This document shows, in pieces, positions 23,849 to 55,340 of a DNA stretch of 64,000 bases (its first letter is position 1; the number at the start of each line of letters is the position of its first letter). Source of the DNA: Chara braunii (Eukaryota > Plantae > Charophyceae); the NCBI GenBank assembly GCA_003427395.1, contig BFEA01000030.1, positions 2,779,728 to 2,843,727 of the forward strand, given 5' to 3'. The translations under genes and the position numbers were made by a program. The notes beneath the pieces were generated by a model. It was not told where the DNA came from and searched no databases. It worked only from the letters and a program-made list of their open reading frames with translations.

Positions 23849-26128
23849 TTTTTTTTTTTTTTTTTTAGAAGGTTTGTAAATTTATTACCAATGAACAAGA
23901 GGCTGGGAAAACCTCACAATCAACCTGGAGGAAAAACTGGGGCCATTGCCCAACTTACGCTTATGGTGGAAACTGAGTCCAGCGTCTCATACTTCTCTTC
24001 ACCCGTCTTCTACCAAAAACTCATGAAGCACCGGCTGGTATTCCCAGCTCCTCAAGCAAAAGAAAAGGTAATCTATCACTGTTTCCAAGAACGTTCCAGG
24101 GAGCAATCCCTTACTTCGTTCCATGAGAGTCTATCTGCGACTCCCCGTCCCTATCTGAGACTTCGCCTATTCTCCTACACTGTGCTCCCTTGACATTCAA
24201 TCCTTAGGCCCTAAGCCACGGGTCAATCTCCATCTTTAGTTCAGTGCTAACTGTAGATAACCGGTTACCAATCGCCCAGGTCGTCGAAAACCAGATCTTG
24301 CCTTTTTTCTGCCAGTTTGCCCACATTATGTTCCTTATCTCTACTTTAACCGTATTCTGCGTCTGCTCCAATGACCAATGCTCGTCCTTAAACAAGGCGT
24401 CATTCCTGGCCTGCCACAGTATCCTCATACAGACGCCTCTACAGATCTGGGCCACATATCCCCAACCTCTATCATACGGTTTCAGCATTTCTGCTACGCC
24501 AGTCAGAATCCACAAATCAATCCACTCAAAGGCCTGTTCTGGGGGTTGGGTTGTGATACTCCTCCAATGGCGTCTCCACCATTGCCATAATCTGATTGAA
24601 ATGGGGCAGTGTATCCACAGATGTACTATAGACTCCCAGGCCTACCTACACCGTGAGGAAGTCTGAGAGACCGTCATACGTCTCGAGGCCAGCCAGGTGG
24701 CTGAGGCCACTACCTGGAATGATTGAAGCCATAGCAGAGTTGCAGTCTTCTGGTTGGTCATACGCTTCAATTGGGCCCACAGGGATCTCAGATCATCTGT
24801 TGATAACAGATTCGGGCAGTAATCATTCCACCGCTTAAGTGCCAGTGTGGCAGGTGTTTTTGCAATTTTAGCCTGCTGTTGTTCTCTCCCTACCTTTGAT
24901 GAGTAGAAGGGTAACGGTATCTGCTTTGCTTCCCTTCCTTTCTCCGTCCATCCGTATAGATAGGGCTCAATCTTCAATATTGAACTGAGAACGCCTCCTT
25001 GACACATTTCTTTTCCCTTCGCATCCACTGTTATCCAGACTCTTGCTTCCTCCAGATCCCCTAACAATCTTTCTGTCCTTTCTTCTACTAGTTGCAGAGG
25101 CCGTGAGAAGGGTAGTGAGCAGTTCATTTGCAGACGTGGTTTCCACTCTTGAATCTTCGTGTCCTGCGTCAAGCTTGGACCGATAACTCTCCAAAACTTC
25201 TCTTCTGTTGTTGGGGCTCTGAACCATGTGTCCGTCTTCAGGCATGCGGCATCCTTTAGAAGTGCTATCCACTGCTGTGGGATGGCCGCTTTTAATGCTT
25301 CAAAGTGAACCCGCATATTATGTAACTGTGGGAGAAGACCCCGAAGTGTGGTAAGGGTAATCCAGTCCATAGTAACATTGTCCCACAAATCCCTTACCTT
25401 CAACACTCCTTTTGATATCCAACTCCCGCCAAAGCACCCTGCTGTATCAGCTGCTGAGAAGGTCGATCCGTCGGATTGCAGAATGTACACATTCTCAAAG
25501 AGTAGCTGATTTAAAATCACGTCTTTCGAAACCGGAGGGTTAATAAGCTCTGGGTGTAATTTCCTCCAGGCTTTAAGAATGTCTCCCCAAAGGCGGGATT
25601 TTGGACGCTTGTTACCAAATGAAGGCAACAGAAGACAAGACCAAACTGTACTTCCATCTTTCAGCACTCACTCAGTTCCTAAAATATATTCAGCCAATTC
25701 AATCCATATCTTATGTTCCCCTTTCCCAAATGACATAGCCTTCACTGACCATCTTGCCAATAAGGCCAAATTCTATTGTATGGGATCTGTTAGCCCCAAA
25801 CCCCCTTCTGATCTGGACTGTGATACCGTCCCCCAGACAACTTTGATGAGATAGCGCTCTCCTTCTTTTAATGATGACTTCCATATATAGCTGGCTGCTG
25901 CTTGTTTAACATTTTTATATGCTCGATCACTCAGCAAGTGCACCACCAGTGGGAACCATAAGATGGAAAATGTCGTTGTTGTTAGTATCAAAGTTCGACC
26001 AAATAATGACAATTGGTGCCCTCTCTCCCGGTTTGCTATCCTAGATACCACTTTTGTTTTCAAGATGTCGTCTTGTCTTGAAGCAGCGTTCCCTAAAGAA
26101 ACTTGAATCCCCAACAAACGTTCCGATT
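23849..26128 (-). mobile_element. L1/Tx1-type LINE, 3' part (post-RT region, cysteine-rich C-terminus, 3' UTR, poly(A))
   Basis: LLGIQV...LSLFGRTLI...KVVWGTVSQSRSEGGLGL; ILWQARNDALF; T-tract at 23849-23866 is the poly(A) tail. Confidence 0.9.
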
Positions 26129-26949
26129 AACTGACATTTCGTTAAAACTAACATTTTTTTCTAAAATCGCGAAATCGAAGTCCTTATTTTTTTTCCACAA
26201 CAAGCCTTTTTTATTTTAATAAATGTGACCTATATGATCCTATAGTACTATGCTGCACATGTGCAAATTTTATGTTAGTTTTGTTTGATTTTCTTCAGTT
26301 TGCTCTTTTTTTGTGACTCGGTCATTAGTTTACCTTCAAAATTAGTTACTTTTTCGGAACTTTGTCCGTGTCCATCATTTTTGTGTCGTGTATTTGTTGT
26401 TATTATTTGATGTTTTGTTGTTTTTTTTCCCATGCACATATCCACTTCACGTGTATGGAGCACTTCATGCTTCGTTTTTTTGTTCTTTGTGTAGTTTTCC
26501 CTATTTTATGTGCGACATTAACTCATTTTATTCTTTATTTCTCTGTTTTTTCTTCCTAGCTTGTGTATTTTGTGCATTCATTATTCTGTTGTAATGTTCA
26601 GTGCAATATAAATACTTTGCTATTTTGCACTTGTCTGTTCATGTTTAGTGTGTTACTTGTGTGTTTTACTTCTGGCTACGACTAAATTGTCATTGATTCG
26701 TTCTCTAATAAGTAACTTCGTTTTGTACCAAACAACTTTATTCAGTTGATTGGTGTGTTTTCGAGTATTGTACAATCCCTTTTCGGAATTAGCATACATT
26801 TTGTATCGTATTCGTGATATTGTGTTTGCTGCACACACGCATAACATATACACACACACATACACACATCAAGATACAGAGACACATACACATACACATA
26901 CTCACACACACGCACACACACAGTGTTTTATTTGCAAACACATGCATCT

Positions 26950-27270
26950 ATGTATAAGATGAATGTTTCCGTTGCCACATTAAGGACAGTCGTACACGTC
27001 TCTGCTTCAACCAGTGCATGGGGTACAAAACTTTTCTCTCCAAACTTTGCTAAAGATGAATGTGTCCGTTCCCAGAGTAAGAACGATCGTGCACCTCTCT
27101 GCTTCAACCAGTTCAAGGGGTACAAAACTTTTCTCTCCATATTTTGCTAAACATATGCATCTACGACATAGTTCATGGAGTTCAAAACTTTTCTCTCCAA
27201 ACTATGCTAAAGACGAATGTGTCTGTTGCCACAGTAAGGACAGTCGTACACGTCTCTGCTTCAACCAGTC
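26950..27270. repeat. Three degenerate direct repeats (~100 bp)
   Basis: aagatgaatgt..cgttgccaca.taaggacagtcgtacacgtctctgcttcaaccagt recurs at ~26956, ~27052 and ~27210. Confidence 0.75.
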
Positions 27271-27356
27271 GAAAATATCACTGCTTTCTTCCCCCCACGT
27301 GTGTACTTTTTTCTATCGAAAATAACGTCTAATGTGTCATCCCGATGTTCGACGGT

Positions 27357-28115: not shown

Positions 28116-28335
28116 CTTGCAAAACGAAAATAATGTAGCATATGTTTACATTTTGTCACTACTGTGCACATTCAGTCACTTTTTTGTTTTTTTATACTGA
28201 CCGTGCTTAATAAACGAAAAAAAGAAAAAAATCGTACAAGCATTCATACGATTATTAAAGAGTCATTGTACACATACACACACACACACACACACAACAC
28301 ATACAGACACACACACATACAGACACACATACACA

Positions 28336-28379
<44 letters not shown>

Positions 28380-28474
28380 NNNNNNNNNNNNNNNNNNNNN
28401 NNNNNNNNNNNNNNNNNNNNNNNNNNNNNNNNNNNNNNNNNNNNNNNNNNNNNNNNNNNNNNNNNNNNNNNNNN

Positions 28475-28514
<40 letters not shown>

Positions 28515-28695
28515 ACACATTCATACACACGCTGCAATGGTTAATATCCAGTAGTTGTATATCTTATCTCGCATCCTTCTTCACATCCATCTCTACTTTG
28601 TGGATGTTGATATTTGTCTATTCAATCAACATGCCTCAATTATTAAATATGTTTTTATGCGTGTGCGCATATAATTCACTTCATGATTACGACTG

Positions 28696-31189
28696 TCATT
28701 GCCCGCAGATCCTTTTCACAACATTCAAAATTGACACCCATTGTGATTCATTTTTTGACCCATCTAACATGCACGGAGGAATTGGCGGTTGAGGCATGCT
28801 ACTAAACTCCTTTATGAATGCAGAATAATTTAAAAGTTGTTTCCCTTCTCGCATCAATTCTGTTTTTTTACCCTCATGAATTTCCACAGCTCTCTTATAA
28901 CGCTCCCAGTAGTCTGGCTGCTTTGTCACCGGTCTTGTCGTTCATAAATTCGCACGTCATCTACATCAACCTCTGTGAATCTCATGACAACCACTAGTAA
29001 TTTTGTTTCTTCCACTTCACATTTGACCATCGACATGTTTTCATATGGAAATGTTCTGCCGTTCGTGATTGTTTCTAATGCTTCTGGCACCGCTTGATTG
29101 ATAACAGTCACCATTGGCCCCGGAACACCTCTTGTATCCCCCGGTTACAAAAATAATTATCGTTTGTTTCACAACCCTGCGTTGCATTTGCGGAGGCCAC
29201 AAGTCGCATGTTTTAGCCATCTTCGACATCTTGCGTTGCATTTGCGGAGGCCACAAGTCAAAAGTGGGATATATCATGCTCTCGTTAAGCGTGCGGAGCC
29301 CAACCGCTGTCATTCGTTGCATGTGCCGAAATGAAATAAGTTGACTGTAGCATATGGGTGTTCCCCATTTGTCAACATGACGGCTCATATTTACCTCCAC
29401 GTCCATAGTCGAAGTATCCGACCTTGCGGTTGCTGTAGAGATAATATAACATGAACGGAAGTTAGCTACGTCTGTCATCGTATAGCCCCTACAAAACCAT
29501 CAGATTATGAGGTGGCAACATGTGTACCGATGATGACTGATGCGCACTTCATGTTCGAATGTTACATCAAACAACATTCATTGTTGCGTTAGAATGTGCC
29601 TGATGAACCGCCTCCAATGATTTCATTCTGGTCGCTCCTCCTTCCATTCATCCACGAGGGCACCTACACCTTGCAAGCCTTTGAAGAAATCCCCACTTTC
29701 CAATATAACCTTTAGGCTACGTGGTTGAAATGGCATGGAAGGCCCCGCCCATCTCCCCTGCTTATGCACAAGTTTTTGTTCCTTATAAACTTAGACTCTG
29801 CCAACCATATTTGATACAATTCGCGATATGCTTTCTGCAATGACCTATGGTGATTGAGTTTTGCAACGAGACCTCGTCTGATATCTGGCATGGCACCTTC
29901 GAAAAAGTCTGTTTGTTTTGTGCAGCAATTGCATCTAGCATAGTCGGTTGACCTTGTCAGGTGAACATGCCAGAAGAAATCACGCTACATCTTTCCGAAT
30001 ACTTGCGAAGAGCAGCTTCTATGTCCTGTTTCTGCAACCGTCTTTTGATGCTTTCATACACGTCTGTTTTGGTAGCATACGTTGGAGGCAGTCTGATGCG
30101 CAGCCTAACTGCGTAGTCCTTGTTCACGTCTGTCTGATCAGGCATTGCATCGGCCTCCTCCATGATCAAAGTCTGGAATGTCTGGAAAGTCATTGCATAA
30201 GTTGCTGATATGGTGGAGTGACCTTTTCTTCCATGAATCGGCAGCACCGTACCGTTTTCATGCAAATCATGGTAGAACGCGTACGTGTTTCTTGAGAAAC
30301 CGATTATGTAGCACCATGCCTTAATACAAACCCTGTGCTTTTCCACAACAGGTTTGACCACCTTCGTTTCATCTTCGATGCAAGTAAAACTGTCTAGTTG
30401 TCTCATCCACCACTTCCTCCTTTCTTCGGGGCTCACCTTGTACACCTCTTCCGTTATCATTCTAGAACAACACTACATTTTTTTGCAGCACGGCTGTGCA
30501 TTCTTCCATGGTGCATTTCTCCAACAAATCTGCATCTGATGTCTCGCTTCTTCGCTTTTGATTCACATACGTGTATTTCCTCTTCCCCGTACCCGACCCC
30601 AACTCTGTCAGAAGGGATGGTGGCTCACTGACACATTGTTGTGTCGTGTGGTCTTTGCTCTCATCGGAAGGTTCATCCGGTGGAAAAGATGCGTTTCCTT
30701 TCCACCATTGTCCTCATCCGAATTGCAGCGAACGGATGAGTCTTCGTCACAGCGGATGTCTGGAGGCGACAGATGCTTGCTTGATGCCTGACATGGAGGA
30801 GGAGCGGATCAGTCATGCTTGACTGCCTTGATTAAATCCTCCAGTCTCAACCTTCGGACTACAGTGTGGGACGGGTGACTCTCATAGTGAAGAACTGTTT
30901 TTCTCTTCTGAGGAGCTCGAATTGAACGTGGCGAGGAGTTACGGTTTCGGCGAAGTTTCCCCAATGAAGGGGACCTGCTCTCAGAGCTGGAGAAGGTTTG
31001 TTCCGGCGATGGAGTTCCTCGGTATGCATTGGATGACTGTGATGGATGCGGGCAGCTCCCCTTCTCACCGTTGACGTTCGATGTGTGCATGGTTTCTGCA
31101 AAGCATTCGAAGACATTGTTAACGGAAAATTCCACTATCGCTGGACCTCCGAACACGCCGACCATAGAAAAAAAACTGATCCTGATCAC
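28696..31189 (-). pseudogene. Sola-like (DUF7869-type) transposase remnant; catalytic core apparently deleted
   Basis: CCKKC (~30475-30490); VCIKAWCYIIGFS; HGRKG; ADAMP; LPPTYATKTDVY; then in a shifted frame YARCNCC...HHRSLQKAYRELY...KNLCI (~29945-29764), where the first catalytic Asp would be expected but is absent. Confidence 0.6.
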
Positions 31190-31379: not shown

Positions 31380-33140
31380 GGTCGGTCTGTCGTCCCCGAG
31401 CCTCCACACCATGGGATGGTCCGGCGGCCAGGGGGCGCCGGACCATTCGATGGTCCGAAGCCCCCGAGGCGCCGGACCATGCGATCGTCTGGAGTCCCCG
31501 GGGCACCGGACCATGCGACGGCCCGGAGTCCCCGAGGCGCCACATTGTGGTATGGTCCGGCGTCCACGGGGCTCCGGAGACGTCGCATGGTCCGGCGTTC
31601 GCGGGGCTCTGGAGACGTCGCATGGTCCGAAGTCCCCGAGGCGCCGTACCATTCGATGGTCCGGAGTCCCCGAGGCTCCGGAGACGTCACATGGTCCGGA
31701 GTCCCCGAGGCGCCGGACCATTCTCATGGTCTGGAGTCCCCGAGGCGCCGGACCATTCGATGGTCCGGAGTTCCCGAGGCGCCGGNNNNNNNNNNNNNNN
31801 NNNNNNNNNNNNNNNNNNNNNNNNNNNNNNNNNNNNNNNNNNNNNNNNNNNNNNNNNNNNNNNNNNNNNNNNNNNNNNNNNNNNNNNNNNNNNNNNNNNN
31901 NNNNNNNNNNNNNNNNNNNNNNNNNNNNNNNNNNNNNNNNNNNNNNNNNNNNNNNNNNNNAGGCGCCGGACCATTCGATGGTCCGGAGTCCCCGAGGCGC
32001 CAGACCATTCGATGGTCCGGAGTCCCCGAGGCGCCGGACCATTCGATGGTCCGGAATCCCCGAGGCGCTGGACCATTTGATGGTTTGGAACCGAGGCGCC
32101 GGACCATGGGATGGTCGGGTGTCCCCGAGGCGCCGGACCATTCGATGGTCCGGCGTCCCCGGGCTGCCGGACCATCCCATGGTGTGGAGGCCTCGAGGCG
32201 CCAGGTCATGGAATGGTCCGGCGTCCCCGATGTGCCGGACCATCCTATGGTCTCTGTTGGACCCCGAAACGCCGACCACTCCATGGCCCGGAGCCCCCGA
32301 GGCGCCGGACCACCCCATGGTATGGAGCCTCCCCCCCCGAGGGCCCGGACCATCGAATGGTCCGGCGCCTCGGGGTCGCTGGACCACCCCACGGTCCGGA
32401 CCCCCTGATGCGCCGGATCACCCCACGGTCTGGAGCCCCCAAAGCCCCAGATCACCGGATGTATCGGCCCCCCGGGGGCGCCGAACCACCCCATGGTCTG
32501 GGCCCCCGAGTCGCCGGACCACCCCATGGTCTGGAGCCCCCGACGCACCGGACCATCGGATGTATCGGCACCCCGTGGGCGCCGGACGACCCCATGGTCT
32601 GGACCCCCCGAGGCGCCGGAACAGCCCATGGTCTCGAGGCCCCGACGCACCGGACCATCGGATGTATCGCCGTCCCTGAGGCGCTGGACCACCCATGGTC
32701 TCGATCCCCCAAGGCATTTTACCACCCATGGTCTGGAGCCCCAGAGGCGCCGGACCACCCCATGGTCTTCAGCCCCCGAGGCGTCGGACCACCGGATGTA
32801 TCGCCGTCCCCGAGCCGCCGGACCATGCCATGGTCTGGAGCCCCCGAGGCGCCGAACCACCGGATGTTTCGGCGTCCCCGGGGCACCGGACCATCCCATG
32901 GTGTGGAGCCTTGGGTGTTCGCCCATCCTCGTCGCGCCGGACCATCTCATGGTCCGGAGCCACCGAAGCGTCGTACCATCCCCGTGGTGGGGAGCCCTTG
33001 GGGACACCGGACCATTGGATGCTCCAACTTCCTCGAGGCGCCCGACCATCCCATGGATTCTTGCTCCGCGGCGCCTCCGTGGCTCCGGAATATGGGAGGC
33101 CCCCGAGGCCTCGGACCATACCATGGTTCGGAACGCGTGA
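31380..33140. repeat. GC-rich tandem array of ~33-bp palindromic units
   Basis: Unit gaggcgccggaccattcgatggtccggagtcccc contains the stem ccggacca...tggtccgg. Confidence 0.92.
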
Positions 33141-33806: not shown

Positions 33807-34700
33807 TCAAGTGGACCTCCACGAGCAGCCAAAGCCATACAACGCGTTCATCGATGAGCCGACTGTGAGGCACTGCGGTTCGTTGATGGTCGCATTCTTT
33901 GTGAACACTGAAATGTATTTCATGCGAACGAACCCTCCACCCCCTGTCAACGATTTCCCTATTGCATCACAGATACACGTCACTTTTTTATCCACCTCTT
34001 GCCAAATGTCGATATCGTCGACTTGACCGGCTAACACTATATTCATCCTATCGTTCGGACATCGGCCTTGCACTAAGCATATGCCCTTCTTTTGGAAACT
34101 CAACTTGTTGCGCAAGACATATACAACTGTGTCGGTTAAAGTTCGACTTTTGTTCGAACAAGCCACGCACAACACCCTACCGAATATGAATTTGGCTAAA
34201 CGTAATCTGATGCAATAGTACGACACAGCTCGTAGAGATAGGGCCTGGCCGCGGAGCGGGTGCTACTCAAGGTCAGGACTTAGGCGAGCGCAATCCAACA
34301 TTTCTTGCTTCATCGCAGTAGACCAAACACGTGGCGAAGTCGAGGTGTATTCACATTCTTGCAAGCTGCACTCACGATGACAAAGCCACAATGAGGCACG
34401 CAAATGGCGGAGGTACTTTGGGACGAGGACGTTGTTGGGCACTGGGATCAGATTTCCCCACTCCATCATGCTAGCGAATTTATAGTCATTAGCCCATGGA
34501 CAGTCTCGCATTACGCTCTCCCAAAAACTATCGTTCGACATGTCGAGATGCTCATCAACGAAAGGGGCAACAATCATCCATGGATCTGATTCGAAGTCCT
34601 CCCTGGTTGCAGTCAGGATTTTCGTGTTTCTGCCAGAACGTCGTATCGACAGTGCGCAAGGGTGAAACGGTTGTGGTCGACGCTGGAGCCATATCGCACG
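33807..34700 (-). pseudogene. Unknown cargo gene, paralog copy B
   Basis: DPWMIVAPF...WESVMRDCPWANDYKFASMMEWGNL; RVLCVACSN..TLTDTVV; FVRMKYIS...ALYGF. Confidence 0.65.
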
Positions 34701-35107
34701 ATTCATCGTATATGAAATTTTCATCGTCAGTAAGATGTACCCTACACACATGAATGAACACAACATACATCAATTATTGTGCACCCTGCCTTCCCGTGTG
34801 GCCGAATACCACAGGTAATAGACAACTTTGTTCCGATGAGTAACATACATTTCGGGGCATCGAATATTGGCGTATCGACTACAAAAAACATATATCTTTC
34901 TATCACGAGAAACATACATGCCGCTATACCTGAGCTAACCTGCGAACATATTAATGGACTAACAAAATGCTTGTATAGCAATGTGTCCATCAATCGACAT
35001 AACTTACGTTACAGTAGCACATCAACGCAATCCAACATCCCTTACATACACCCGTAAGCACGAACAGTTTCACTCCCCACGCTGCACCGTGACCCTTTCA
35101 CCTACAG

Positions 35108-35990
35108 TTAAGTTGAAAGCAAACGTTGTCTTTTACTGAACCCGTACAAAGCAGACAGCGACAAACCGTAAGTAAGGCGGAGGGGGTCTTTGTATTTTCC
35201 CTTTTCCGAGAATGGAGAGATGTATTTCATGCGAACAAACGTCCCGTTTCTAGCCAAGTACTTCCCCATTGCATCTCTGATGCGCACAATGTGAGTCTCA
35301 ACCTCCAACTTTTCGTCGCCTTATGATACTCTCACGTGCTGCATGAAATCGGACTTGCTCTCCCTACCTAAGCACTTGAGAAGCGAGAGGCAATCTTTAG
35401 TAAGATGTAAACTATTGTGGGTCGCAAAAACGACGGCGTCTGTCAAAGTTGTTGCATTGTTCGTGTAGGCCACACATAATATCCTGCTGACAGGCTGGTG
35501 TCCTATTTTCACATGGACACAACCGTAGGAAATCACACTGGACGAATTCTGACAACTACTAGGCAAAGGGTAGTCACTCAAGAAGTCGCAGAACCTTGCG
35601 CATGTCAACAACTCGAATTGCTTAATCGGGGACTAGGTCCTGGACGAGGTTGTGATGCACTTGAACTCTAGAAAGTCGAAGTTGGCATCGGAGGCCGCAA
35701 AGGGGAATGTCTTTGCGGCAACAAATCCGAAGGCAGCAATTGTATCATGTTTCCCCACTCCAACATGTTAGCAAAGCGATACTCGTTCGCCCATGGACAT
35801 AAGGACATTGCGGACTCCCAATCCTCTTCACACCAATAATGAATAGGCCGATCAGTCCATGGCACGACGCCCATCCACGGATCCATCTCAAAACCTTCTC
35901 GAGTGGCGGCGATGATCTCCGTCCGCTCCCGTGTTCCCTACTTGCCGCTCGTGGTATTAGCGGGAACGCAGCTCTGACCGAGTCGTCCTC
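35108..35990 (-). pseudogene. Unknown cargo gene, paralog copy A
   Basis: DPWMGVVPW...WESAMSLCPWANEYRFANMLEWGNM; RILCVAYTN..TLTDAVV; FVRMKYIS...ALYGF. Confidence 0.65.
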
Positions 35991-36029: not shown

Positions 36030-36111
<82 letters not shown>

Positions 36112-36310: not shown

Positions 36311-36529
36311 TCTACGTTGCGACTTGTACTCACCCCCGTACGAGTACAAGTTGTACTCATTTCTTGTACACTACTCGTACTCAAGGCCCCGTACGACTTT
36401 TTTTAATTTTTTTTACTGTTTTTATTTTTTTTTTCCAATTCTAATAAGAATCTGCAGATGGTGCTCACGCAAATGTTGCTTGTCTTAGGATGTTATATCA
36501 CACATATGTTTTTCGGGTTTTTTGGATGA

Positions 36530-36560
<31 letters not shown>

Positions 36561-36655
36561 GTACGGGTTGTATGGGGGCATACAGGTTCCCGTACAGATA
36601 CTATCTGTATGTTTTGTACGGAAAGGCCCTGTACGTGTACGTTCGGTAACGTAGA
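36311..36655. mobile_element. MITE with TA TSD (Tc1/mariner-type) in an AT-rich tract
   Basis: TA|TCTACGTT...AACGTAGA|TA inverted ends with multiple internal gtac/cgtac motifs. Confidence 0.65.
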
Positions 36656-41890: not shown

Positions 41891-42387
41891 TAGGCTACCA
41901 GAGTGGCCCGGGGTCACTTGCCCGGCCGGGCCAAAATAATTAAAAATAAAAAAAAATAAAAAAATATTTTTTGTATTTTTTTTTTTTTTTTAAATTTGGT
42001 GAAGAATTTCGATGTGACCCTGAGGGGTGGAGCAAGGCCCGTAGGGCCACTGCTCGTAGGGAAACGAAACAAAAGAAAGAGAGTTTTTTTGTGCAGTTGT
42101 AACGTGTAACCCATAACTGCTGGAAGCAGTGGAAAGCAGACCTGACTTCGGATCCATAACATATATTGCTGGCCTGCTCCATTGCCGTACAATCTTTGCC
42201 GAACGTCGGATTTGTGCAGATGCACTGAGGCCTTGGGAAAAAGACAAATTAACAAGGAATTCGTATGTTCAATTTTTTTTTTTTATGTGCCCTTCGATAT
42301 TTTCAGGATCTGTGTAGTATCTGTTCTGATCAGTTGGAAAAAAAAAAAAAGATATATTTAGGGGTTCTGGACCCCCCAAAAAAAAAA
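41891..42387 (+). mobile_element. Non-autonomous TIR element end (same family as 62712-63011)
   Basis: taggctaccagagtggcccggggtcacttgcccggccgggccaaaa and tttcgatgtgaccctga match the reverse complement of 62860-63010. Confidence 0.65.
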
Positions 42388-42866
42388 NNNNNNNNNNNNN
42401 NNNNNNNNNNNNNNNNNNNNNNNNNNNNNNNNNNNNNNNNNNNNNNNNNNNNNNNNNNNNNNNNNNNNNNNNNNNNNNNNNNNNNNNNNNNNNNNNNNNN
42501 NNNNNNNNNNNNNNNNNNNNNNNNNNNNNNNNNNNNNNNNNNNNNNNNNNNNNNNNNNNNNNNNNNNNNNNNNNNNNNNNNNNNNNNNNNNNNNNNNNNN
42601 NNNNNNNNNNNNNNNNNNNNNNNNNNNNNNNNNNNNNNNGGGTGCAGGGACCGGGGGTCCGGGTCCAGGGTCGGCGGGGGTCCCGGGGTCGGGGCCGGGG
42701 TGCTGGGTGCTGGGTGCCAGGGGCGGGGTCCCGCGGGGGTGCCGGGTGTCGAGCGGGCGCGGGGGTCTTCAGTGGGGTCCGGGGGTCGGCGCCCCCGCGG
42801 GAGGGGGTCCGGGGGTGAAATCTCGGCCCCGGCTTTGCCCCCAAGGGTCCCCGGGTGACAACCCTG

Positions 42867-44560
42867 CCTCCAACAGTCTGGCGCCTCGACGACGCCGGAC
42901 CATAGTGGGTGCAGCTGCTGCTGATGTTGTTGCTGGTCCAACCACTGCAGCTGCTGCTGTTGTTCGATACCGCGATGTTGTCGCTGGTGCAACTGCTGCT
43001 GCTGCTGTTCGATACCGTTGTGTCGTCGCTGGTGCAGCAGCTGTTGCTGCTGTTCAATACCGCTAGGTTCTCGCTGGTGCAGCTGCTGCTGCTGCTGTTC
43101 GATACCGCTATATTGCCGATGGTGCAGCAGCTGCTGCTGCTGCTGTTCGATGCCGCTATGGGGTTGCTGCTGTTCCAAACTGCGCGAGGCGTCCGATGGT
43201 CTGGCGTCATCGAGGCGCCGGACCCTCCAATGGTCTGGCGCCTCGACGACGCAGGACCATAGTGGGTGCAGCTGCTGCTGATGTTGTTGCTGGTCCAATT
43301 GCTGCAGCTTCTGCCGCTGTTCGATACCGCTATGCTGTCGCTGGTGCAGCTGCTGCTGCTGCTACTGTTCGATACCGCTATGGGGTTGCTTCTGTTCCAA
43401 ACCGCGCCGAACCCTCCAACCGTCTAGCGCCTCGATAACGTCGGACCATAGTGGGTGCAGCTGCTGCTGATGTTGTTGCTGGTCGAACTGCTGCAGCTGC
43501 TGCTGCTGTTCGATACCACTATGTTGTCGTTGGTGCAGCTGCTGCTGCTGCTGTTTGATACCGCTGTGTTGTCGCTGGTGCAGCAGCTGCGGCTGCTGTT
43601 CGATACCGCTATGGGGTTGCTGGTGCAGCAGCTGCTGCTGCTGCTGTTCGATACCGCTACAGGGTTGCTGCTGTTCCAAACCGCGCCGGACCCTCCGATG
43701 GTCTGGCGTCGTCGAGGCGCCGGACCCTCCAATGGTCTGGCGCCTCGACGACGCCGGACCATAGTGGGTGTAGCTGCTGTTGATGTTGTTGCTGGTCCAA
43801 CTGCTGCTGATGCTGCTGCTGTTCCATACCACTATGTTGTCCCTGGTGCAGCTGCTACTGCTGCTGTTCGATACCGCTATATTGCCGATGGTGCAGCAGC
43901 TGCTGCTGCTGCTGTTCGATACCGGTATGGGGTTGTTGCTGTTCCAAACCGCGTCGGACCCTCCGATGGTCTGGCGTTGTCGAGGCGCCGGACCCTCCAA
44001 TGGTCTGGCGGCTCGACGACGCCTGACCATAGTTCTTGCAGCTGCTGCTGATGTTGTTGCTGGTGCAACTGCTGCAACTGCTGCTGCTGTTCGATACCGC
44101 TATGTTGTCGCTGGTGCAGCTACTGCTGCTGCTGTTCGATACCGCTGTGTTGTCGCTGGTGCAGCAGCTGCTGCTGCTGTTCGATACCGTATGGGGTTGC
44201 TGGTGCAGCTGCTGCTGCTGCCGCTGTTCGATACCGCTATGGGGTTGCTGCTGTTCCAAACCACGTCGGATCCTCCGATGGTCTGGCGTCGTCGAGGCGC
44301 CGGACCCTCAAATGGTCTGGCGCCTCGACGACGCCAGACCATATGGGGTGCAGCTGCTGCTGATGTTGATGCTGGTGCAACTATTGCTGATGCTGCTGGG
44401 AACCGCTGTCGACACCGTGCTGTTCGAAACCGCTGTCGGGTTGCTGCTGATGATCTTGCAGGTGTGGTTGCTATTGCCGCTGCTGCTGCTGATGTTGTTC
44501 CTGGCGCAACTGCTGCTAATGCTGTTCGATGCCACTACCGGGTTGATGCTTTTCGAAACG
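42867..44560. repeat. Composite tandem array: (CTG)n-rich units interspersed with ggcgccggaccctccgatggtctggcg units
   Basis: Repeated gctgctgctgctgttcgataccgct; minus-strand frames read SGIEQQQQQLHQR or SNSSSSSCT. Confidence 0.9.
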
Positions 44561-45188
44561 GCGCCGGACATCAGCCTTGCACTGAACAATAGACGGCTTC
44601 CTGTCCGGATGCACAGAGGATACACGGAGATTACGGGCAGAGGTCACACAGAGGTTACACAGAGGTTACACCCGGGTTGCACAAACCCTCCGACGGTCCG
44701 ACGTCGTCGGGGCGCCAGACCATCGGGGCCTCCGCGTCACCAGACCCTCCTTCCTTCTCCTTCCTTTCCTTTCTCTTCCTCTTGCTCTCCGGGTGCTGTG
44801 ACAGAGATTACAGGCAGAGGTTACACAGGGTCTGCCGCCTGGTGGTCGACGTTACACAGTGAGAGAGCTTATAGGCAGAGGCTGCAGAGTGTGAGAGATA
44901 ACAGGCAGACATTGTGCCGGGATTGTACGTGGATGTTACACAGACATTAGAGGCAAACGTTACAACGAGTACACCGAGATTATGGGCAGCGGTTGAACAG
45001 GATCTGCCGCCACGTCGTCGAGGTTACACAGTGCGACAGATTGCAGGCAGTGGTTGCACATGCCCTCCGATGGTTCGGCGCCGTCGAGCCGCCGGACCAT
45101 CGGAGGGCCCGGCGTCACCAGACCCTCCTTCCCCTACCTCCTTCTTCCTTTCCTTCGTCTTCCTCTTCTTCTCCGGATGTTGTGAGGG

Positions 45189-48100
45189 ATGTTACAGGCA
45201 AAGGTTACGCAGACATTAGAGGCGTGTTGGTGTTGGATGCGGTGGTGGTGTTATGCAGCTGCTTGCTCGTCAGGGGTCTCAACACCGAAGGTTGTCGGAA
45301 GGGCGGTCACGTTCCAAGAGAAGTATTGGGCGATCGATTGGGACCTCGGTATGAAAGTTCCCTGTTGCGGGCCATGCATTTTCTTGCGGGATGAGAGTGG
45401 TGGTTACTACCCGTGCGGGGGTATCAAGACTTACTCGTTTGATAAGAACATGCCTGACGAGGAGTACATGAGATTCCATTTGACGACGTGTTTCAACCGC
45501 GACGGTCACGAGGTGCTTGACAACTACAAGCTCATGTCTCTCCAAGTCGACAAGTTCCAAGGTTACGGCATCCGCGCTGCATCAATGCCGCCGTTCGACA
45601 AGTCGCAGAAGAAGGATGCGTCGCAGATGGTGATGCTAACGCCGTTCGAGTTCCTCAAACGCATTAATTGCTATAAGGTGTCGAACCATATCGTGACGAT
45701 TGACAACAGCCTGCAGTTGTCAACTCCCTTCGTGCCTTTCGACTGTGATCTTGGAGACTTCGCAGACATGGTGCGACGTCACAAGCTGTAGGCAATGGGT
45801 CAAGCCGTTTTGCGAACTACCGTACATGTGAGCTCGCCACAGGCGGTAGGCAAGAGTTGTGGGGAGCCGAAAACAGCTGCCCGTATGAGCAAAAGTGGGG
45901 CCGCATCGACACAGGGAAAGAGCGTGAGCAAATCAGCTTCTCTGCTCCAGCCGAAGGGTGTGTCTGCGACGCGGGCACCATCACATGCAGAATATGCGGC
46001 ACGCGTTTCTTTGAATCCGGCTGGTGGGGCCACTGACCATGAGGATGACGACGAAAACACAGAGGAGGACTCGCGCTTCAGACAATGGGACGGTGGGCGG
46101 TGGCCCGATGGCAATAATGCGAAAGACAAGGAAGGGGACGACGACGAACAGCGGTCCCGCGACGACACACACGATGAAGAGGGAAGCTTGGAGGATGACT
46201 TGGCCGAAGGCGATGGTAGTGAAGGCCAAGAGGATGGTGGTCACGAAGGCGATGGGAGTGAAGGAGAAGAAAACGAGGATGCTACAGAACGGGAAGACAA
46301 CTACGAAGGGGGGAGCGAAGGAGATGAGGGTGGGGCGGACGACGACGACGGCGGGAATAGAGGGTCACAGAAAAGGCGGGAACTGTCTTCCCGTGCCACA
46401 AGTCATGATGGTCCGGCAGAAGATGACGATGTGTTGCATGGAACACGGAGGTCTGTGTGCATGCGCAAAAGGAAAATGAGATGTGGGAAAGCAGAGGAAG
46501 AGAAGCAGAGATAAGCTAAGCTCATCAGCCTACAGGCCTCAAAGGAGGCTTACAAGAGATCCTTGGAGGCCCAATCTGCTAAACCAGCAAAGGAAAAGCG
46601 TGAACGAACTCGATCTTCCCAGAGACCAAAGACGAAAGCAAAGGCCGAGGAGACAAAGGAAGTTGCGGACTCTGGGGACGAAGCGGCGGGGGTCGACCCG
46701 AGACATACAGCGTCAAAGCCTGGAGAGTTGACCAACGACACCATCGACACCACGAGATGTTTTTTCCTGGAATACGACGAGGACGGCAATGCGATAGATC
46801 GTCCTACCCAAGTGTTCGTTGATGTGGTCAAAATACTGCCCAACCCTTCGGAAGGCGTGCAATACAACCACAGACCGTTGAACGAGATGTTGGTCACCTC
46901 CATCAGGGATGCAATGGAACACCCGGAAAAGCAGAAGGAGTGGGACAGAAACATGTGGATTCTTGCTCCTGTCGTTGAGGTGCAGAAGGATGGCCGGAAG
47001 CAGTGGGAACGTGTGAAGCTGGAGGAGTGGGATGATGACAAGGTTGCCTCCTACCATTGGTACACAGTGGCCGGCCAACATACAGCGGAGGCAACAAAGA
47101 GGCTGGTCGCTGCAAAATCGTCTGCTGCCCACAACTGGGGCGTGCATTCTTGGAAGGCGCGGGTTGTGTATTTTGACGATGACCATTTGGAGGGGTATGC
47201 GTACATCTCCACGTTTGACAACACCAAGTAGACATGTGCTATCCCGTCGTCGTTTCGAATGACTGTGACTGTTATAAGAGGCCTGTGGCAGAGTATGAAA
47301 GAGCCAAAAGGTGATTGGCATCAGGCAAAGATGGTGGAAGAGAGGACTGCACAGCGTGACCAATATCATGAGTTCGTACGGAAAGCTATACGAATGACTC
47401 ATGACACATCACTCTGGAATCAGTCGTTGGCGAAAAGATTTGTGAGGAATTGGTCAAACCTTTTGAGACCCTACATGTGTCTTGCGGCGAGCGGCAGGGT
47501 TGTGTGGAATCTGGTTGAGAAGTTCTTTGACAAATGGGAAAAAGACGAACTGCCAGGGCAGGACGGAGTGAGACAAGTGGATCAGGAAGGGAAAGCAGGC
47601 GAGGCGGCAGGACCGGGCCCTGCAGCGAAGACGGTGAAAGGCAAGAAAGTGTTGGTGCACTACGTCCAGTCCAACAAAAGCTCATCGGGTTTCTATGTTT
47701 GCATCAATAATCCCCCCGCGAGCGCATGGAAGGTGTTCGACAATTTCACATCAAGGGAGAAGGAAATGACCCTCGAGAAAATACTTGCGAGACACGTTGT
47801 CGTCACGATCGGAAGGGCATTTGTGAAAAAACTGATGAACATGCAAGACCTGTACGTGGAGGTGAGAAGGGAGAGATATATGGTTCGCATGTTTAACTAT
47901 GTCCTCTTCAAGATAGTGCAGAGGTCGGAGGAGGAGTGAAATGCCAAGTTCTTCATTGGCTACGATACCATAATGAGGCGGTTTACACCACAAGGGTTGA
48001 CGACAGAAAAATGGGAAGAAACAAAGTCCAAGATCGTAGCAGAGAAGACTATCAATGTCCCGAAACGATTGGGCGGCGTGGATTAGGCGAAACTAGGAAA

Positions 48101-50651
48101 AAGGAATGTCGGGGGGCACAAGGTGACGACTGCAATATATATGGAGTGTCCGTATTTCCTCAAACTTTTCGTGCATGAGATTCTTGGTGCAGTTGACCAA
48201 TTGAGGGACGACCTGAGACGGATCAGCTCAAATGCTCAGCACATAATGTGGGACAAGCGCAAAGATCACACGACGTATCTTCCTGTCTACATCATACCTG
48301 TGGACGCACTGCACTCGACAAAAGATTTGACTCATGCCGTGAGAAAGCTGAGTTGTCACCTTGCAGTATTGGACTTGGCTCCGTTGAAGAATCTCGACGC
48401 ATGGAACGACCAAAGGTTTCGCGAGCTCCGCCAAATGATGACGGTGTTGTGCGGGTCGCATTGGGCGCTAATCGTATTCAGCGCATTGAAAGTCGAGGAA
48501 ACGGTGTTGAGGAACGTCTTCAGGTGGGACAGTGTGAGAATTCTTCCAAGGCGCTGGCGTCGTTATAGCGAAGCAGCATCATCCTGCACCCAAGTTGGGA
48601 ACCTTCCGTTGAGAGGGCATGACTCCATGACCATAGTCCTGCACGATACAGAGAACGACTTCAAAAAGGTCACGGTCGCAAAGCCTCGAAGGAAGGGGAA
48701 GGTGTTATTTGTACAATGTACAAAAAAGGTAATCGGCATGCGGGGCGATAGCAAACCTGTGTACGGGATATGGGAGAGAGAACCTGCAAAGATGAAAGAC
48801 TTGTGCACCTGGTTTTCGAAGGAAGGGGAAGGTGTCCTGTTACTGGGCAACGTGCAGGCAGGAACAACGTGGGACTTGCTTCGCTCAGGACACCATGTCG
48901 TCGCATGCGATGGTTCCTCAAACCTGATGGAGTACTCCACTTTGTTCATCGATCGTCACGTCAACAATCCGGATAATAGGTGTCACTTTGAACGACCCAG
49001 ACCTCAACATCGTGCAGACCGAGACATGTTTCTGAAGCTCGACAAGAAGAGGGACTCTCTGTGGAGCTATCTGTTCTGCAATGCACCCGCAACACCAACA
49101 GATGCAGATTATCTCCACCGTAAGGTGATAGCGATCCAACATCTGCAAGGATATCACAACGTCAAACGAGGTACAATTGAGATATTTTTGGGGCGATGTG
49201 AACACCTATGGTTTGAAAGGAAGCGAGACAAACTTTATGCCAAGGTTTACTGCGAGGTAATGGATGTTGGGGAGCAGTTTAACATTATGGACAATGAGGA
49301 GGAGACGGAGGATGAGGAGATTGACCTGCCATTGTCGGGCACGCATCACAATGCAGTGATAGAGGAAACACCTTCGCTGTCCGCTTTGGGTGGTCAACAA
49401 GCGATGGAGGAAGATGTTGGCGGCAATATCGCAAGTACCAGGACCGAAAATGTGATGTGCGGAACAACACCGAACACAGCTGGTGCAATGGAAGGCAGCA
49501 CATCCAAGTGCGGCATGAAGGAAGCAACCCCAGGATTCATTTCGCTCGTGAGGAGAGTTTGCAATGACATAGAAGGAGCAACGGACGGCGAGACTCAAAA
49601 TGTTGCGCATGCAGACAAGGAATCAGAGGACGGCCCATATGGGATGGACATAGAGGATGATCACCTTTTTCACATCCCGGACGACGCCCCCAAACAACTT
49701 GCACCTGGTGATAGCATATCATATGACATGAAGGAGATGAAAGGAGGACCTCACTTTCTAGACATAAAGTACAAAGAGTCACATGAACACGAGTGGGGGC
49801 ATCACATCGTATGACATCCAGGTCTTTTCGAGCCTTGTGTGATTGATGGCAGATGGCACATGGCTATCCGAATGGGTGGGAAATGGGTATTTAGGGAAAG
49901 AGTCCTCAGGAGCAGGTTTTATGAAATAGCGAAGGACAGCTTGTCTACCCCCGTGAAGCAGGCGAACAAAGATGCGTCAGACCACAAAATATCAGACAAA
50001 GTGAACTCGTTGTTCGAATTCCTGCATGAAAATCACCTTCACGAGTATAGCGCTGCGTTCTACGACTAGAAATCGAGTCTGTCGTATGGAGCCGTCATAT
50101 GGTCTGTGGACTACTGTGCAACGGACTGTATGTTCGACAGCGACATAGTTCTGGGATGCAGTCAAGGCCTTGAGGGACACACGAGTGCAAGGAAGAAGAT
50201 CGATTCAGCAGCAGCAGGAGATGGTGGCGAGAGTATGGCAGACAAGGAAGGGCATATCAGGATGCAAAACACAAATGGAGATGAATTCGCAGAGCGGCCA
50301 TCAAGCACACCGCAACCAACACTTAGACTGTCAGAAGGCATCAGTGCAGTAGGAGCCAGAAGTGAGACAACACCAACAGCGGGCGGGGAAGTTGTTGCAC
50401 ACGTGCATGGCGAGATTGAAGAGACCAGGGACAAAAAGCATCAGACGAAGAAGGGTCAAAATTTCAGGCACATGAGGGAGTGGAGGCGGTGGCAAGGAAT
50501 GTCGATTCGCATTCCAAGCAGTCGCATACGACTGTCATCACTTCACATGCGCAAGGCACCGACGAAGCTACCAGGGAGCAAAGTGCGCATGAGAAAGAAG
50601 AGGGGAAAGGACCAGTGCATATGGAATGCACTGGTCCAGGAACGTAAATAG
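45189..50651 (+). pseudogene. Large (~1800-codon) cargo gene: N-terminal unknown domain, acidic linker, ParB/Srx-like region, degenerate beta-class DNA amino-methyltransferase-like region, C-terminal unknown domain
   Basis: ORFs starting at 45189, 45795, 46563, 47259, 48123, 49839 and 50106 share one frame and are separated only by in-frame stops. Motifs: NHRPLNEMLVTSIRDAM...VAGQHTAEA; CHLAVLDLAP; EREPAKMKDLCTWFSKEGEGVLLLGNVQAGTT...GHHVVACD. The single-gene call is stronger than the domain calls. Confidence 0.65.
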
Positions 50652-51057
50652 TTTCGGAGTCAACAATCGCAGAAATGAGAGATGATTTGGAGGGTGTCAG
50701 TGCGGCAGAGCATGAAAAGGTTCCAAGCACGGCAAACAGGGAGAGGGGGGAGGAAAATGAGAAAGAAGAGGAGGCGGACAAGAGTCGGAGTGTGATCAAC
50801 TTGGTGGACCAGTCAAGTGAGAACGAAGAAACATCTGACAAGAAAGAAGCGAAAAAGTCGGGAGAGGAGTTTCAAGAAAGAGAGCGTGATTTGAGCGAAG
50901 GGAGTGAGGGAATATGCGGTAGAAAAAGAAAAGCAGGCAAGGAAAAAGAGGAATGCACAATGCGACGTTCAAAAAGAGGCAGGGAGAAGAAAGCACATTG
51001 CAACGTGTAGTGCATGTGTGCACATGGGTGTCTGCCTGCATTCACAGTCGATGGTAG

Positions 51058-51114
<57 letters not shown>

Positions 51115-51391
51115 ATCACCGGTGAGGATGAGATTTTAGAGTATGAAACGATGAGTGAGAGACGTGATTTATATGTCGCTTGTGTCGGTCAAGTACATAT
51201 TACATTTTGAGTACGCTTCGAGTTTTTGACATGTAAATGAAAAAATGGAATGCACAAATTATATATAGATTGTGTCGATCGAGAAAAAAACAGCACGATG
51301 TGTATCAGATTATGCTATTTTTGTATGGAAAGTGCTCGATGAGTTCAAAATTTTCACATTGTTGCTACCTTCGGTGTATGTAAAGATGAAG

Positions 51392-51454
<63 letters not shown>

Positions 51455-51469
51455 ACACACACACACATT

Positions 51470-51546
<77 letters not shown>

Positions 51547-51639
51547 ACGTACGCACGCACATGAACACATAATTGATAATGCAATGACTTCACATGTTAA
51601 CAATAAGTAATCCCATTGTGGTGTGAACCAGGGACATTG

Positions 51640-52479
51640 CTACACGTCCAAGGCGAACGCCGATGTAAATACGGGTGGAGTATTCAATTAGCAACGGATG
51701 CTATCACCGAGTCGGAAGAAAATACATTGCGGCAATGGGAAAATAAGTTCAACAATTACAAAACACTGTCAAGCACCAAGAATCCAGCGATGCGAGAGGA
51801 GTTAAGATTCACGGTTCACGATATGAGTATCCTCATGAGTGGCACACGATGGCTAAACGATGACATTATAAACTTTTACAGCAATATGATAAAGGTTGAC
51901 AAAATGTGTAGGACCTCCCATCGAGAGTGCGATACGCGAGCTAACATGTCCGCGAAGTACGCAAAGGGTTTGATTCCTTGAACAACTGTATGTAACTTTT
52001 TTTTTTTTGTCAAGCTCATGGATGACAACTTCAGATATCACTGTGACAAAGTAGCTAAATGGTTCAGAGACGTATTGATCGCAGATAATGACTTGATTTT
52101 AACCCCATACCATAATATTCATGAAAAGCATTGGACACTTGTTGCAGTAGACCTTCGACGGACAGTTATAGAGTACCACGATTCGATGGAACCAAACTCT
52201 GACATTGCAAAAAAGGTAGTCAATAACTTCGCGAGATTCGTGTACGATCGATCAACACAACAAGGAAAGCAAGTCAACACTAGACATTTCAAGAAGGTAT
52301 TAGAGGTAGTTGGTATCCCGAAAGAAAAAGACATTCATGAGTGTGGAGTATTTGTGCTAGCATACGCATCTCTTTTAGCAAGAGGTCGGTTGCCACCATT
52401 CGAATTCGATATGCACGATATCCAACGCATTAGACGTCGGATCGCACTAGACTCAGTAGCAACTAGAGAGGGTGTGTAG
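51640..52479 (+). pseudogene. Ulp1-like SUMO/ubiquitin-like protease (peptidase C48)
   Basis: WLNDDIINFY; KVAKWF; HWTLVAVD...IEYHDSM; IPKEKDIHECGVFVLAYA. The His-Asp-Cys triad is present and the oxyanion Gln is replaced by Glu. The reading frame is broken at ~51980-52015. Confidence 0.9.
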
Positions 52480-53044
52480 GATGCGACAGATTATAGAGGA
52501 GATTAAAGAGGTTGAAAGGTGACAGTCATTGAATTGTTCGGTTGCAAGTCACTTATGGCAGTTTGCAAATGTACAATGTTATGTACAATATGGAATGCTT
52601 TGACCGACAGATCGCAAATGCAGCGACATATACATCAAACTTGTACGTAGTCATACAACATGTTGAGGTCTACATATGTATGGTCTATGTGAGGTCTGGA
52701 TATGTATGGTCTATGCGAGGTCTGGATATGTATGGTCTATGTGGAGAGTAGAATGCAAAAAGGATGGAAGTCAAGAATGTATCATATACCATAAGCATAT
52801 GTATGGTGTACGCGGTATAATGTGCATATGTATGGTGTATGCGGTATGATGTACCCCTAATGGTATATTGCACATAATAGTTCACCTCCCATATATAATG
52901 CACGTGGTACCATACGACTACAGCCTACCATGGTCTACATATAAAGCCAGAAGTCACGATTTCGGAGGAAAATTTTGTACATTTTTCACTTAAATCAATT
53001 TCGCGATTTCAGAAAAAAATGTCAGTTTTAACGAAATGTCAGTT

Positions 53045-55340
53045 GATTCCTTCTGTCTAACTCTTTCATTCCTCAATCACAGGCAATAGTGAATGGTTCA
53101 GGCAGCAAATAAGAAGACTTTGACCAGTTAATCGAGGCTTCCGACAATTGGCAGTATTCCTCCAGCACTCTCCTAAGCTCAGTTAGTGATGTCTGCGTAT
53201 TCTTACATATCAAAGTCAGGTCGTCTACTAACGCATTCCCCTTCCAGTTAAGCTTATCAGACATATATAGGCCGGTTATTTCATTATTATACCTGATGTT
53301 ATCCAATAGGACTTCCAATTGGATGACGAACAGCAGTGGAGCCAACGGACAGCCTTGTCGCAGAGAACGGGTGAGCATAATTTCCTGCGATAGACAGTTG
53401 TTGACATTTACCACTGCCGAACCTTGAGAGTACATTGCTTTCACTACTTTCAAAAAAATGCGCCAAAATTCATGTTCTTTAATGTAGTGGCAACGAAGGC
53501 CCAACCCACCTTATCATAGGCTTTGCCCATATCGATCAATAGTGTCGCCACATTCCTGTTTTCAGTACCGATAATTTCTAGGGTTTATAGAATTGCCAGA
53601 ATATTTTCATATATCGATCTGCCTTTAACAAAGCCCCCTTGCTCTTGGCCTACTATTTCAGGCAAGTACCTTGCCAATCTGCCCGCTACTGCTTTCGATA
53701 ATATCTTGTAAGCAACATTCAGTAGTGAAATAGGTCGGTAATTTTTTACTTCTTTTTTGTCGCCTTTCTTGTACATTAGTGAAATCACGCCTCTTGTCAA
53801 GCCCTTCGGGAGAGACCTGCCTGTTAATAGCCCATTACTGATGTCTGTGAGGAATGGGCCCATTGAGTCCTAGGTTTCCACATAGAACTCCATCGGGAGC
53901 CCATCGGAACCTGGGCATTTACCCGATTTTATACCTTTCAATGCCTGACCTAGCTCCGTTATTGTGAATGGTCTGTCTAGATCAAGCTTCCCTTGTCTTG
54001 AGATCGTTACCTTCGATCTTTCCCAGTACCTTGAGGTGGTGGTCAGATCAGTATCAAAGTTCGACTCTTGCCTTTTTGTCGAGAATATATCCCTAAAATA
54101 ATCCCTAACATATTCGCACATCTACTGGATGGAGTCTGTGACTGGGAGCAGTGGATCTAGCGGGTGAGCGAGTTGCCTCAGCAAAGGTCTGGACTGACGT
54201 AGAATCAGCGAACGAAAAGTTAATTTCGTCATTCTAATGTAACTTGTGATGCCTCTCGGATTTAACCATTCTAACCACTGGGTTTGTTTTCTTACCTCTA
54301 ACTTTTCTAACGCCAGCAGTAGTTCTTTCCTCTTCTTAGACCAGAAGTGATTTGCATATTGGTCCGTCCTTATCTGTTTTTCTGCTTCTGCGATTGCCGC
54401 TTTCAGATCTTCTCGTCCTTATTTCTTCTCCCGACTTTAATCTGAGAGAAAACATTCATAGTATTTAAAATTGCAGCTAACCCGGTATCAGCCCAGTCTT
54501 CCTCTGTCTGGAATAGCGATTTGGCCTTAACCCAGTATTACATGTGTTTTGTCACCCACTCTTTTATTCCCTTGTCTTTCGGATTGGCGACATTCAACCG
54601 GAAAGAGCCACGCATTCGCTCCACATTGTCTCCAGGTAGGACGTCTATGATCACCGGATAATGGTCTGAAAAAGGGCTAAATTTAAATTCCGCCCATATA
54701 CAGCAATCCCAGATTGCCCCCCTAGCTAGAAAGAAATCTAATCTCCTCCCTGAGGCTAAAGCACTGAACCACGTAAATCCATTTGACTCTGGATTCATGA
54801 CACGATATGCATCTATTAGACTTTGCGACTCCATGAAGTTAATTAATAACTTAGAGTCATCTCTCATCGGATCTAGTCGGGGAGTATCCAATCCTGGAGT
54901 TATAATCGTGTTCCAATCTGGCGCCAATAGTAGATGTTCGGTATCCGGGATAAAGGCTGGGAGATTAGCAAAAAAGAAAATCCTCTCCTTATAATCCACC
55001 GGGGCGTAAATGGACATAACGGCCCAATCCTCTGTTCCTATAGCAAATTTGACCCATCCAAACCTCCTGCCAAATCTGAAAAGGAATCCAGAATCTCAAC
55101 ATCGAGGTCTTCATGGAATAGAACTGTTGTACCCCCTTTAGTCTCATCCGCGGGGGCCCAGTACTGTGGTCCCCTCCACCAGTTTCTTGCTTGCAACAGT
55201 TTGACCGAATCTAGCTTGGTTTCTTGTAAGCAGAGGATCTGCACATTTTCGGAATAGAAGTTAGGAGGTAAGTCTGCTTCTTTTATGCCTCCTCGATGTA
55301 TCCCCTAAACCCTGAGCATTCCACGATCCTATTCTTAACC
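53045..55340 (-). pseudogene. LINE ORF2: AP endonuclease and reverse transcriptase (disrupted)
   Basis: ILCLQETKL; SIYAP; RLDFFL; SDHYPV; KCPGSDGLPMEFY; NYRPISLLNVAYKIL; EQGGFVKGR; LRQGCPLAPLLF; ALVDDLT. Confidence 0.95.

Follow-up and report, generated by a model that had tools for sequence, protein, structure and literature searches.

A 27-kb cargo-carrying transposon of Chara braunii is very probably a giant Sola1 element

Sola elements are mostly 2–9 kb in length, with some exceeding 15 kb. A giant member, Sola1-1_Ec32 of the brown alga Ectocarpus, spans 21,549 bp, has AACCG termini and a 4-bp target-site duplication (TSD), and carries on the opposite strand a gene for a 1104-aa protein combining ParB with an N4C/N6A methyltransferase (MTase) (PMC12477816). 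Sola2-Fanzor elements (DFa/PPa) reach 10–15 kb (PMC3627910), and the giant Plavaka (EnSpm) elements of Bostrychia, with PAG1-3, have a ParB accessory gene beside tandem inverted-repeat arrays (bioRxiv 2025.02.11.637652). The first proposals of transposon-borne ParB-MTase proteins date from 2025 and concern brown and red algae; we found no functional test of them in the literature covered. Here we analyze a 64,000-nt stretch of the Chara braunii genome (GenBank assembly GCA_003427395.1, contig BFEA01000030.1, positions 2,779,728–2,843,727 of the forward strand; hereafter the window), which contains a 27-kb DNA transposon that is very probably a giant Sola1 element.

By description, the Chara element resembles Sola1-1_Ec32 in its giant size, AAC termini, 4-bp TSD and opposite-strand gene of ParB-like and MTase type, as well as in the transposase motifs DGxxQ and DN..NKN. 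The two differ in the terminal inverted repeat (TIR), which measures 50 bp in Chara and 282 bp in Sola1-1_Ec32, and in the flanks seen, which in Chara are without the TSD bias to A. Chara adds Ulp1 plus two or more other types of gene, and also departs from the Ectocarpus element in its degenerate MTase motifs, its palindromic arrays and its diversity (at least 128 clusters at 50% identity). The Sola1 group (Sola1-1_AP; Sola1-1_PPa of Physcomitrium) shares the DDD transposase, the 4-bp TSD and the motifs DNCGGQN and GHT, whereas the Chara copies, at 27 kb here and 36 kb (including gaps and nested elements) at another Chara locus, L008, are far above the size of most Sola elements. Sola2-Fanzor elements are likewise Sola elements that carry a cargo gene and show a 4-bp TSD, but have the motifs DFKEN and HGKSD and Fanzor as cargo. 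Bostrychia Plavaka elements are also giant, carry an amino-MTase gene and give the same weak ParB match (7BNR), but belong to another transposase superfamily and have ParB-2OG oxygenase and MTase-SET fusions, with no Ulp1 mentioned. A first-pass annotation of the window, made from the sequence alone, had proposed an undescribed giant cargo-bearing Sola-like family; its novelty is not supported for the design itself, which Sola1-1_Ec32 shares, and Sola2-Fanzor elements of 10–15 kb are also known. No published account of the Chara family was found in a literature search (Repbase not covered). What the Chara family adds is a streptophyte host, a stonewort closely related to land plants, together with Ulp1 and the extra genes, the degenerate MTase, an array that is a candidate binding site, and a radiation of this scale.

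The ends of the element are well defined. The two TIRs differ at 3 of 50 positions (local blastn E 8e-15), start with AAC and each contain AACT(G/A)ACATTT twice, and GATT adjoins both (Table 1); the mismatch count, the doubled motif and GATT are as first annotated. The range originally given, 26125–53048, has the right ends but counts both TSD copies; the element proper occupies 26129–53044 (26,916 bp, including 522 N). It interrupts an old L1-type long interspersed nuclear element (LINE) that was already riddled with stops. The right-hand LINE piece contains the reverse transcriptase (RT; Pfam RVT_1), matching residues 625–741 of L1 ORF2p, and the left-hand piece opens with RLLGI, which we take to be the YLGI equivalent, the next motif expected after the RT piece. 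The halves, which had been said to rejoin across the element, are indeed consecutive, but they rejoin not quite in frame, with a one-base shift within approximately 10 codons of the junction.

Comparison with other loci shows that the family is a mobile TIR element that moves as a unit. L008 holds a second complete copy (5144–40908; 35,765 bp, of which 13,462 N) with both arms, both TIRs and the TSD CATC. Its flanks, when joined, align across the junction to a paralogous repeat in L009, which provides a contiguous empty site. The right arm is followed at 86–91% identity by L002, L003, L004 and L101, which end at the same base and are flanked by TATA, CTAA, GGGG and TCAC, respectively; the right end of L102 also lies at this base, next to a different flank. 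L001 and L009 share the right arm and end in a gap or are truncated. On the left, L006 tracks the arm up to the TIR and L005 shares portions of the arm and the end, both stopping at the same base with different flanks, and L005, L006 and L008 have the same left end. A sister-family miniature inverted-repeat transposable element (MITE) of 349 bp has the TSD TCCA, and the three 4-bp TSDs seen (GATT, CATC and TCCA) display no evident sequence preference. In total, 15.7 of the 26.9 kb are matched at ≥75% identity in other loci, a figure that includes one MITE and some repeat units. L001 also matches at 36.3 kb, but through an independent MITE insertion, and this match was not counted as evidence for the family. 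The earlier proposal that the element moved as one unit is supported.

The left arm of L005 (4500–16440) appears to be chimeric, with 76% identity in the transposase, 90% in the 260-aa gene and a TIR resembling that of the L102 subfamily. Further DUF7869 elements of diverged families are present in L003 (14441–14731 and 17465–21382) and L007 (2487–18146), with tandem copies of both left-arm genes of no assigned function and TIR-like ends starting with AATA.

The element contains three gaps of estimated size within repeats, and a misjoin in one of them could have united the left and right arms of two separate elements. The gap at 28380–28474 is a collapsed (CA)n tract that is bridged without N in L008, and that at 31786–31960 lies inside one 34-bp array, with flanks that are collinear in L006, itself gapped there. 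The third (42388–42639) is unbridged. A misjoin between the arms is nevertheless unlikely, to the point of being extremely improbable, because the same TSD is found at both ends, the LINE halves are consecutive, and an independent scaffold (L008) has the same two arms with its own TSD.

Between the ends, two conserved arms are arranged head-to-head, with the transposase and genes of no assigned function on the left (minus strand) and a ParB-MTase-like gene and Ulp1 on the right (plus strand), the divergent orientation that had been annotated. The spacer between the arrays of the two arms varies, with a hAT element in L008, a Gypsy element in L006, and two MITEs plus a 5.2-kb segment in the window. 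Both MITEs are later insertions; the 5.2-kb segment has no match in any other copy compared, no open reading frame (ORF) of >130 aa and no match in Rfam. The spacer collects nested insertions and deletions. This variability, together with the short TIR-only relatives that occur (L006), could be taken to mean that the element is a small TIR element whose interior consists of unrelated later insertions or of passively captured host genes, as in Pack-MULEs. For the arms this is largely refuted, since both are collinear to the TIR in many copies at 86–91% identity, the cargo is under purifying selection with gene order kept across deep subfamilies, and the cargo recurs beside DUF7869 transposases outside Chara. 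We therefore regard a pile-up as very unlikely; it describes the spacer only. Within the 27 kb first taken as a single cargo-carrying interior, the two arms belong to the family, whereas the 5.2-kb segment is specific to this copy and the MITEs are nested.

The ratio of nonsynonymous to synonymous substitution rates (dN/dS) between subfamilies is 0.04–0.16 for the transposase, ParB, MTase, Ulp1 and both left-arm genes of no assigned function, values that are rough because dS is near saturation. The order ParB-MTase-Ulp1 is kept in L102, of a subfamily at 63% identity that shares the TIR start, and in L103, of a subfamily at 26% identity. The low dN/dS and the conserved order indicate that the internal genes are maintained element genes and not passive captures. 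In L102, the main cargo gene is immediately preceded by another, diverged MTase-Ulp1 cassette (3506–7264), which suggests stacking or nesting of cassettes, and L001 has an extra inverted Ulp1 at 2153–2567.

Relative to L006, the transposase of the window has lost its DDD core (~700 bp, at ~29762) and a further ~540 bp (at ~29626). The window copy is non-autonomous, as its catalytic core is deleted. L005 and L006 keep the core in stop-interrupted form, with the motifs DGMDQ, DNCGGQNKN and GHTHxxID; it matches Pfam DUF7869 (E 1e-28, DDD), and its motifs agree by eye with those of Sola1-1_AP and Sola1-1_Ec32 as printed in supplements. In L008 the transposase is wholly lost, and therefore either trans-mobilisation or deletion after insertion is common; the data do not tell these two apart. 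Broken genes were searched as separate pieces, not as a joined or read-through protein. The transposase remnant of the window had no match in Pfam, no homologue was retrieved with the transposase N-terminus, and a single-sequence metagenome scan and a viral scan gave no matches.

The 4-bp TSD, the TIRs and the DDD transposase, the core of which is seen in sister copies only, are those of the Sola superfamily. Other cargo-rich superfamilies (KDZ/Zisupton, CACTA/Plavaka, Ginger or Kolobok) have to be considered. Ulp1 and ParB or MTase cargo is known there, as in Bostrychia Plavaka; KDZ elements can carry such cargo, and AA..TT ends resemble Kolobok. The transposase is, however, of the DUF7869 type with Sola1 motifs, and such an assignment is in our judgment a remote prospect. 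For KDZ and CACTA, neither a KDZ nor a Transposase_21 domain was matched, DUF7869 being the only match, and the ends are AAC, without CACT. Kolobok does not fit the transposase or the TSD, which is not TTAA. For Ginger, which had been offered beside Sola in the first-pass annotation, TG..CA ends and a Gypsy-like integrase are absent, so that only the Sola half of that call stands. Within Sola, Sola3 was rejected on its target, which is TTAA, and on the AAC termini found here. Sola2 was rejected as the motifs are unlike those of Sola2 DFa-2/PPa-1, there is no HGK-type third motif and the termini are AAC instead of G-rich; Sola2-1_Ec32 ends in GGCGG (PMC12477816). We consider it highly likely that the window element is a non-autonomous copy of a giant Sola1 family of cut-and-paste DNA transposons in Chara braunii.

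The large cargo gene of the right arm has relatives in at least 128 protein clusters at 50% identity, and all 10 relatives looked up are hypothetical proteins of Chara. Neither its ParB nor its MTase domain was matched in Pfam, and sequence searches of the PDB gave no informative match. The predicted fold of the MTase domain (pLDDT 85) has the motif order IV then I of the beta class, and Foldseek matched it to CcrM, M.RsrI, M.PvuII and rotifer N4CMT (E ~1e-6 to 1e-5). At the motif IV position, DLCxP, DLAP or DISx is found, and [DNS]PP[YFW] is present in none of the 50 Chara sequences that cover it in the alignment; motif I reads LGxxHA family-wide rather than FxGxG. These degenerate motifs point to a pseudo-enzyme. 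The main rival to such a non-catalytic role is that the protein, its unusual motifs notwithstanding, has N4C/N6A methyltransferase activity and marks its own DNA, a function proposed for Ectocarpus Sola1-1. The beta-class fold, a conserved motif IV Asp and the acidic motif II residue would fit this, as would the purifying selection (MTase dN/dS 0.13), the CCGG-rich arrays and a relative outside Chara, L048, that keeps near-canonical motifs. Against the loss of both motif IV and motif I in Chara, we rate an active enzyme as unlikely. The earlier recognition of a ParB/MTase-like gene and Ulp1 as cargo holds, both being family-owned; its label of chromatin-modifying cargo is unproven, given the family-wide degeneracy of the catalytic motifs in the MTase.

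The ParB-like domain has a conserved V-x-G-Q-H, and its best matches in Foldseek, all weak (E ≥0.048), are to ParB, KorB, Srx and Noc. A single ORF in L101 (14836–16932) joins the C-terminal part of ParB to the MTase. Ulp1 retains His, Asp and Cys, with one stop and an altered oxyanion Gln region in the window copy. The 34-bp unit of the arrays consists of 9-bp palindromic arms around a 13-bp spacer that is fixed in 30 of 32 matches; array A has 23 unit matches versus 0 in shuffles. Every close copy has the unit near its cargo gene, and the arrays are rich in CCGG sites. We propose them as candidate ParB binding sites.

On the left arm, homologues of the ~260-aa gene were found only in Chara, and in L007 the gene is repeated several times in tandem next to a related transposase; the second family gene is also present in the related elements L003, L007 and L103.

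Outside Chara, a profile scan for relatives of DUF7869 yielded 199 from metagenomes and 11 from genome bins. L093 holds a 10.9-kb element with AAC TIRs and the TSD ATAA, whose divergent ParB-like gene matches the Chara profile and has a homologue in L096. Both come from bins labelled bacterial (CBDBCZ01, CBDBZY01), but the contigs are probably eukaryotic host DNA, as the genes look intron-split. The element L048 is 8.6 kb long, has AAC TIRs and carries a divergent gene of 922 aa with the near-canonical MTase motifs DSMY and DACCGVGS; the Chara profiles gave no significant match to this cargo, so that its kinship is one of architecture and motifs only. In L093, TTGAAATTTCAA palindromes lie near both ends, and in L062 a 485-aa ORF with a GNNR motif (2156–3610, minus strand), divergent from a DUF7869 gene, is possibly another ParB cargo.

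Taken with known Sola/DDE chemistry, these features suggest how the element may work. A DUF7869 DDD transposase, working in cis until the core was deleted or in trans since then, would bind the doubled 11-bp TIR motif, excise the element and reinsert it at cuts staggered by 4 nt. The ParB-MTase-fold protein would bind the palindromic 34-bp arrays that the element itself carries upstream of each arm, serving as a non-catalytic reader or shield and not as a methyl writer, and Ulp1 would strip SUMO from silencing factors or element proteins. The cargo, as an array-binding ParB-MTase-fold protein plus Ulp1, may accordingly be read, tentatively and with somewhat less than even confidence, as an anti-silencing module. 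Ulp1-bearing MULE and KDZ elements exist, and a likeness may be drawn to VANDAL (Mutator) elements with VANC anti-silencing proteins, in which an element protein acts on its own repeat arrays, as proposed here. The transposase and proteins of VANDAL are unrelated, and the function, shown there, is conjectural here.

Several observations weigh against this interpretation of the element. The Sola1 assignment was made by eye against printed sequences, no fully intact autonomous copy was found among the copies compared, and L005 and L006, whose transposases carry stops, do not show both arms at either locus. None of the copies compared bridges the third gap. For the cargo, the positions of the MTase motifs derive from the strand order of a predicted model, and the ParB match is weak (Foldseek E 0.048). 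The palindromic unit is rare or missing at L102, L103 and L007, loci of distant subfamilies, and a common binding site is therefore not demonstrated.

Table 1. Coordinates of the element, its parts and the interrupted LINE in the window.
Feature	Position	Strand	Remarks
Host LINE, 3' half (thumb and C-terminal region)	24207–26124	-	interrupted
Left TSD, GATT	26125–26128		other copies carry different 4-mers
Left TIR, 5'-AACTGAC...	26129–26178	+	two 11-bp motifs, 17 bp apart
Family gene, ~260 aa	27360–28145	-	dN/dS 0.16
ORF remnant	29044–29499	-	common to L005, L006 and L008
Sola1-type transposase remnant	29626–31099	-	N-terminal part and CxxC..H region kept
Array A, 34-bp unit	31382–33123		upstream of transposase; contains gap 31786–31960
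Second family gene, copy 1	33810–34769	-	dN/dS 0.11
Degraded duplicate of second family gene	35138–35937	-	
Nested MITE, ends CTACGTT	36312–36654		independently inserted in L001
5.2-kb segment	36661–41880		internal 475-bp tandem duplication
Nested MITE, TAGGCTACCAG end	41892–42060		related to MITE at 62712–63010
Array B, palindromic unit	42867–45070		within 45/268/312-bp repeats; upstream of cargo gene
Large cargo gene	45186–51007	+	stop-broken
Cargo gene, conserved N-terminal domain	45186–45788	+	acidic linker next
Cargo gene, ParB-like domain	46740–47228	+	
Cargo gene, helical middle	47232–47936	+	
Cargo gene, predicted beta-class amino-MTase fold	48087–49250	+	acidic tail after
Ulp1/C48 SUMO-protease gene	51607–52476	+	Pfam C48 E 7e-19
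Right TIR	52995–53044	-	
Right TSD, GATT	53045–53048		
Host LINE, 5' half (ORF1-like region, endonuclease, RT)	53049–57704	-	interrupted

Elsewhere in the window, the first 20 kb look like nested long terminal repeat (LTR) elements, with a Gag-type aspartyl protease of an algal LTR retrotransposon at 2113–3462 (minus strand). A PIF/Harbinger transposase remnant (DDE_Tnp_4) lies just past the 3' end of the LINE (22200–23389, minus strand). Tandem repeats of 123/170 bp and 90 bp upstream of the LINE (58622–59462) may represent its 5' region or one end of a different element, and a 114-bp inverted repeat (96%) with a 32-bp loop adjoins a gap at 62013–62272. MITEs with TAGGCTACCAG ends, as at 41892–42060 and 62712–63010, occur also in L003 and L006.

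The comparison ties Pfam DUF7869 to Sola1 elements with TIRs and a 4-bp TSD, and suggests that many hypothetical gene models of Chara (128 clusters) are transposon cargo rather than host genes. A wider reading, which we hold to be doubtful, is that of a deep, eukaryote-wide Sola1 lineage with a plasmid-like ParB/parS module, in which the Chara MTase would be a pseudo-enzyme that binds the palindromic arrays of the element, guarding the element from silencing together with Ulp1 or pairing ends 27 kb apart. Because many diverged subfamilies are under purifying selection and offer both a candidate site and a natural loss of motifs, the idea that such proteins bind and modify their own DNA is directly testable in Chara. 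If the wider reading is true, accessory proteins of this kind would have in the 34-bp array their first identified target site.

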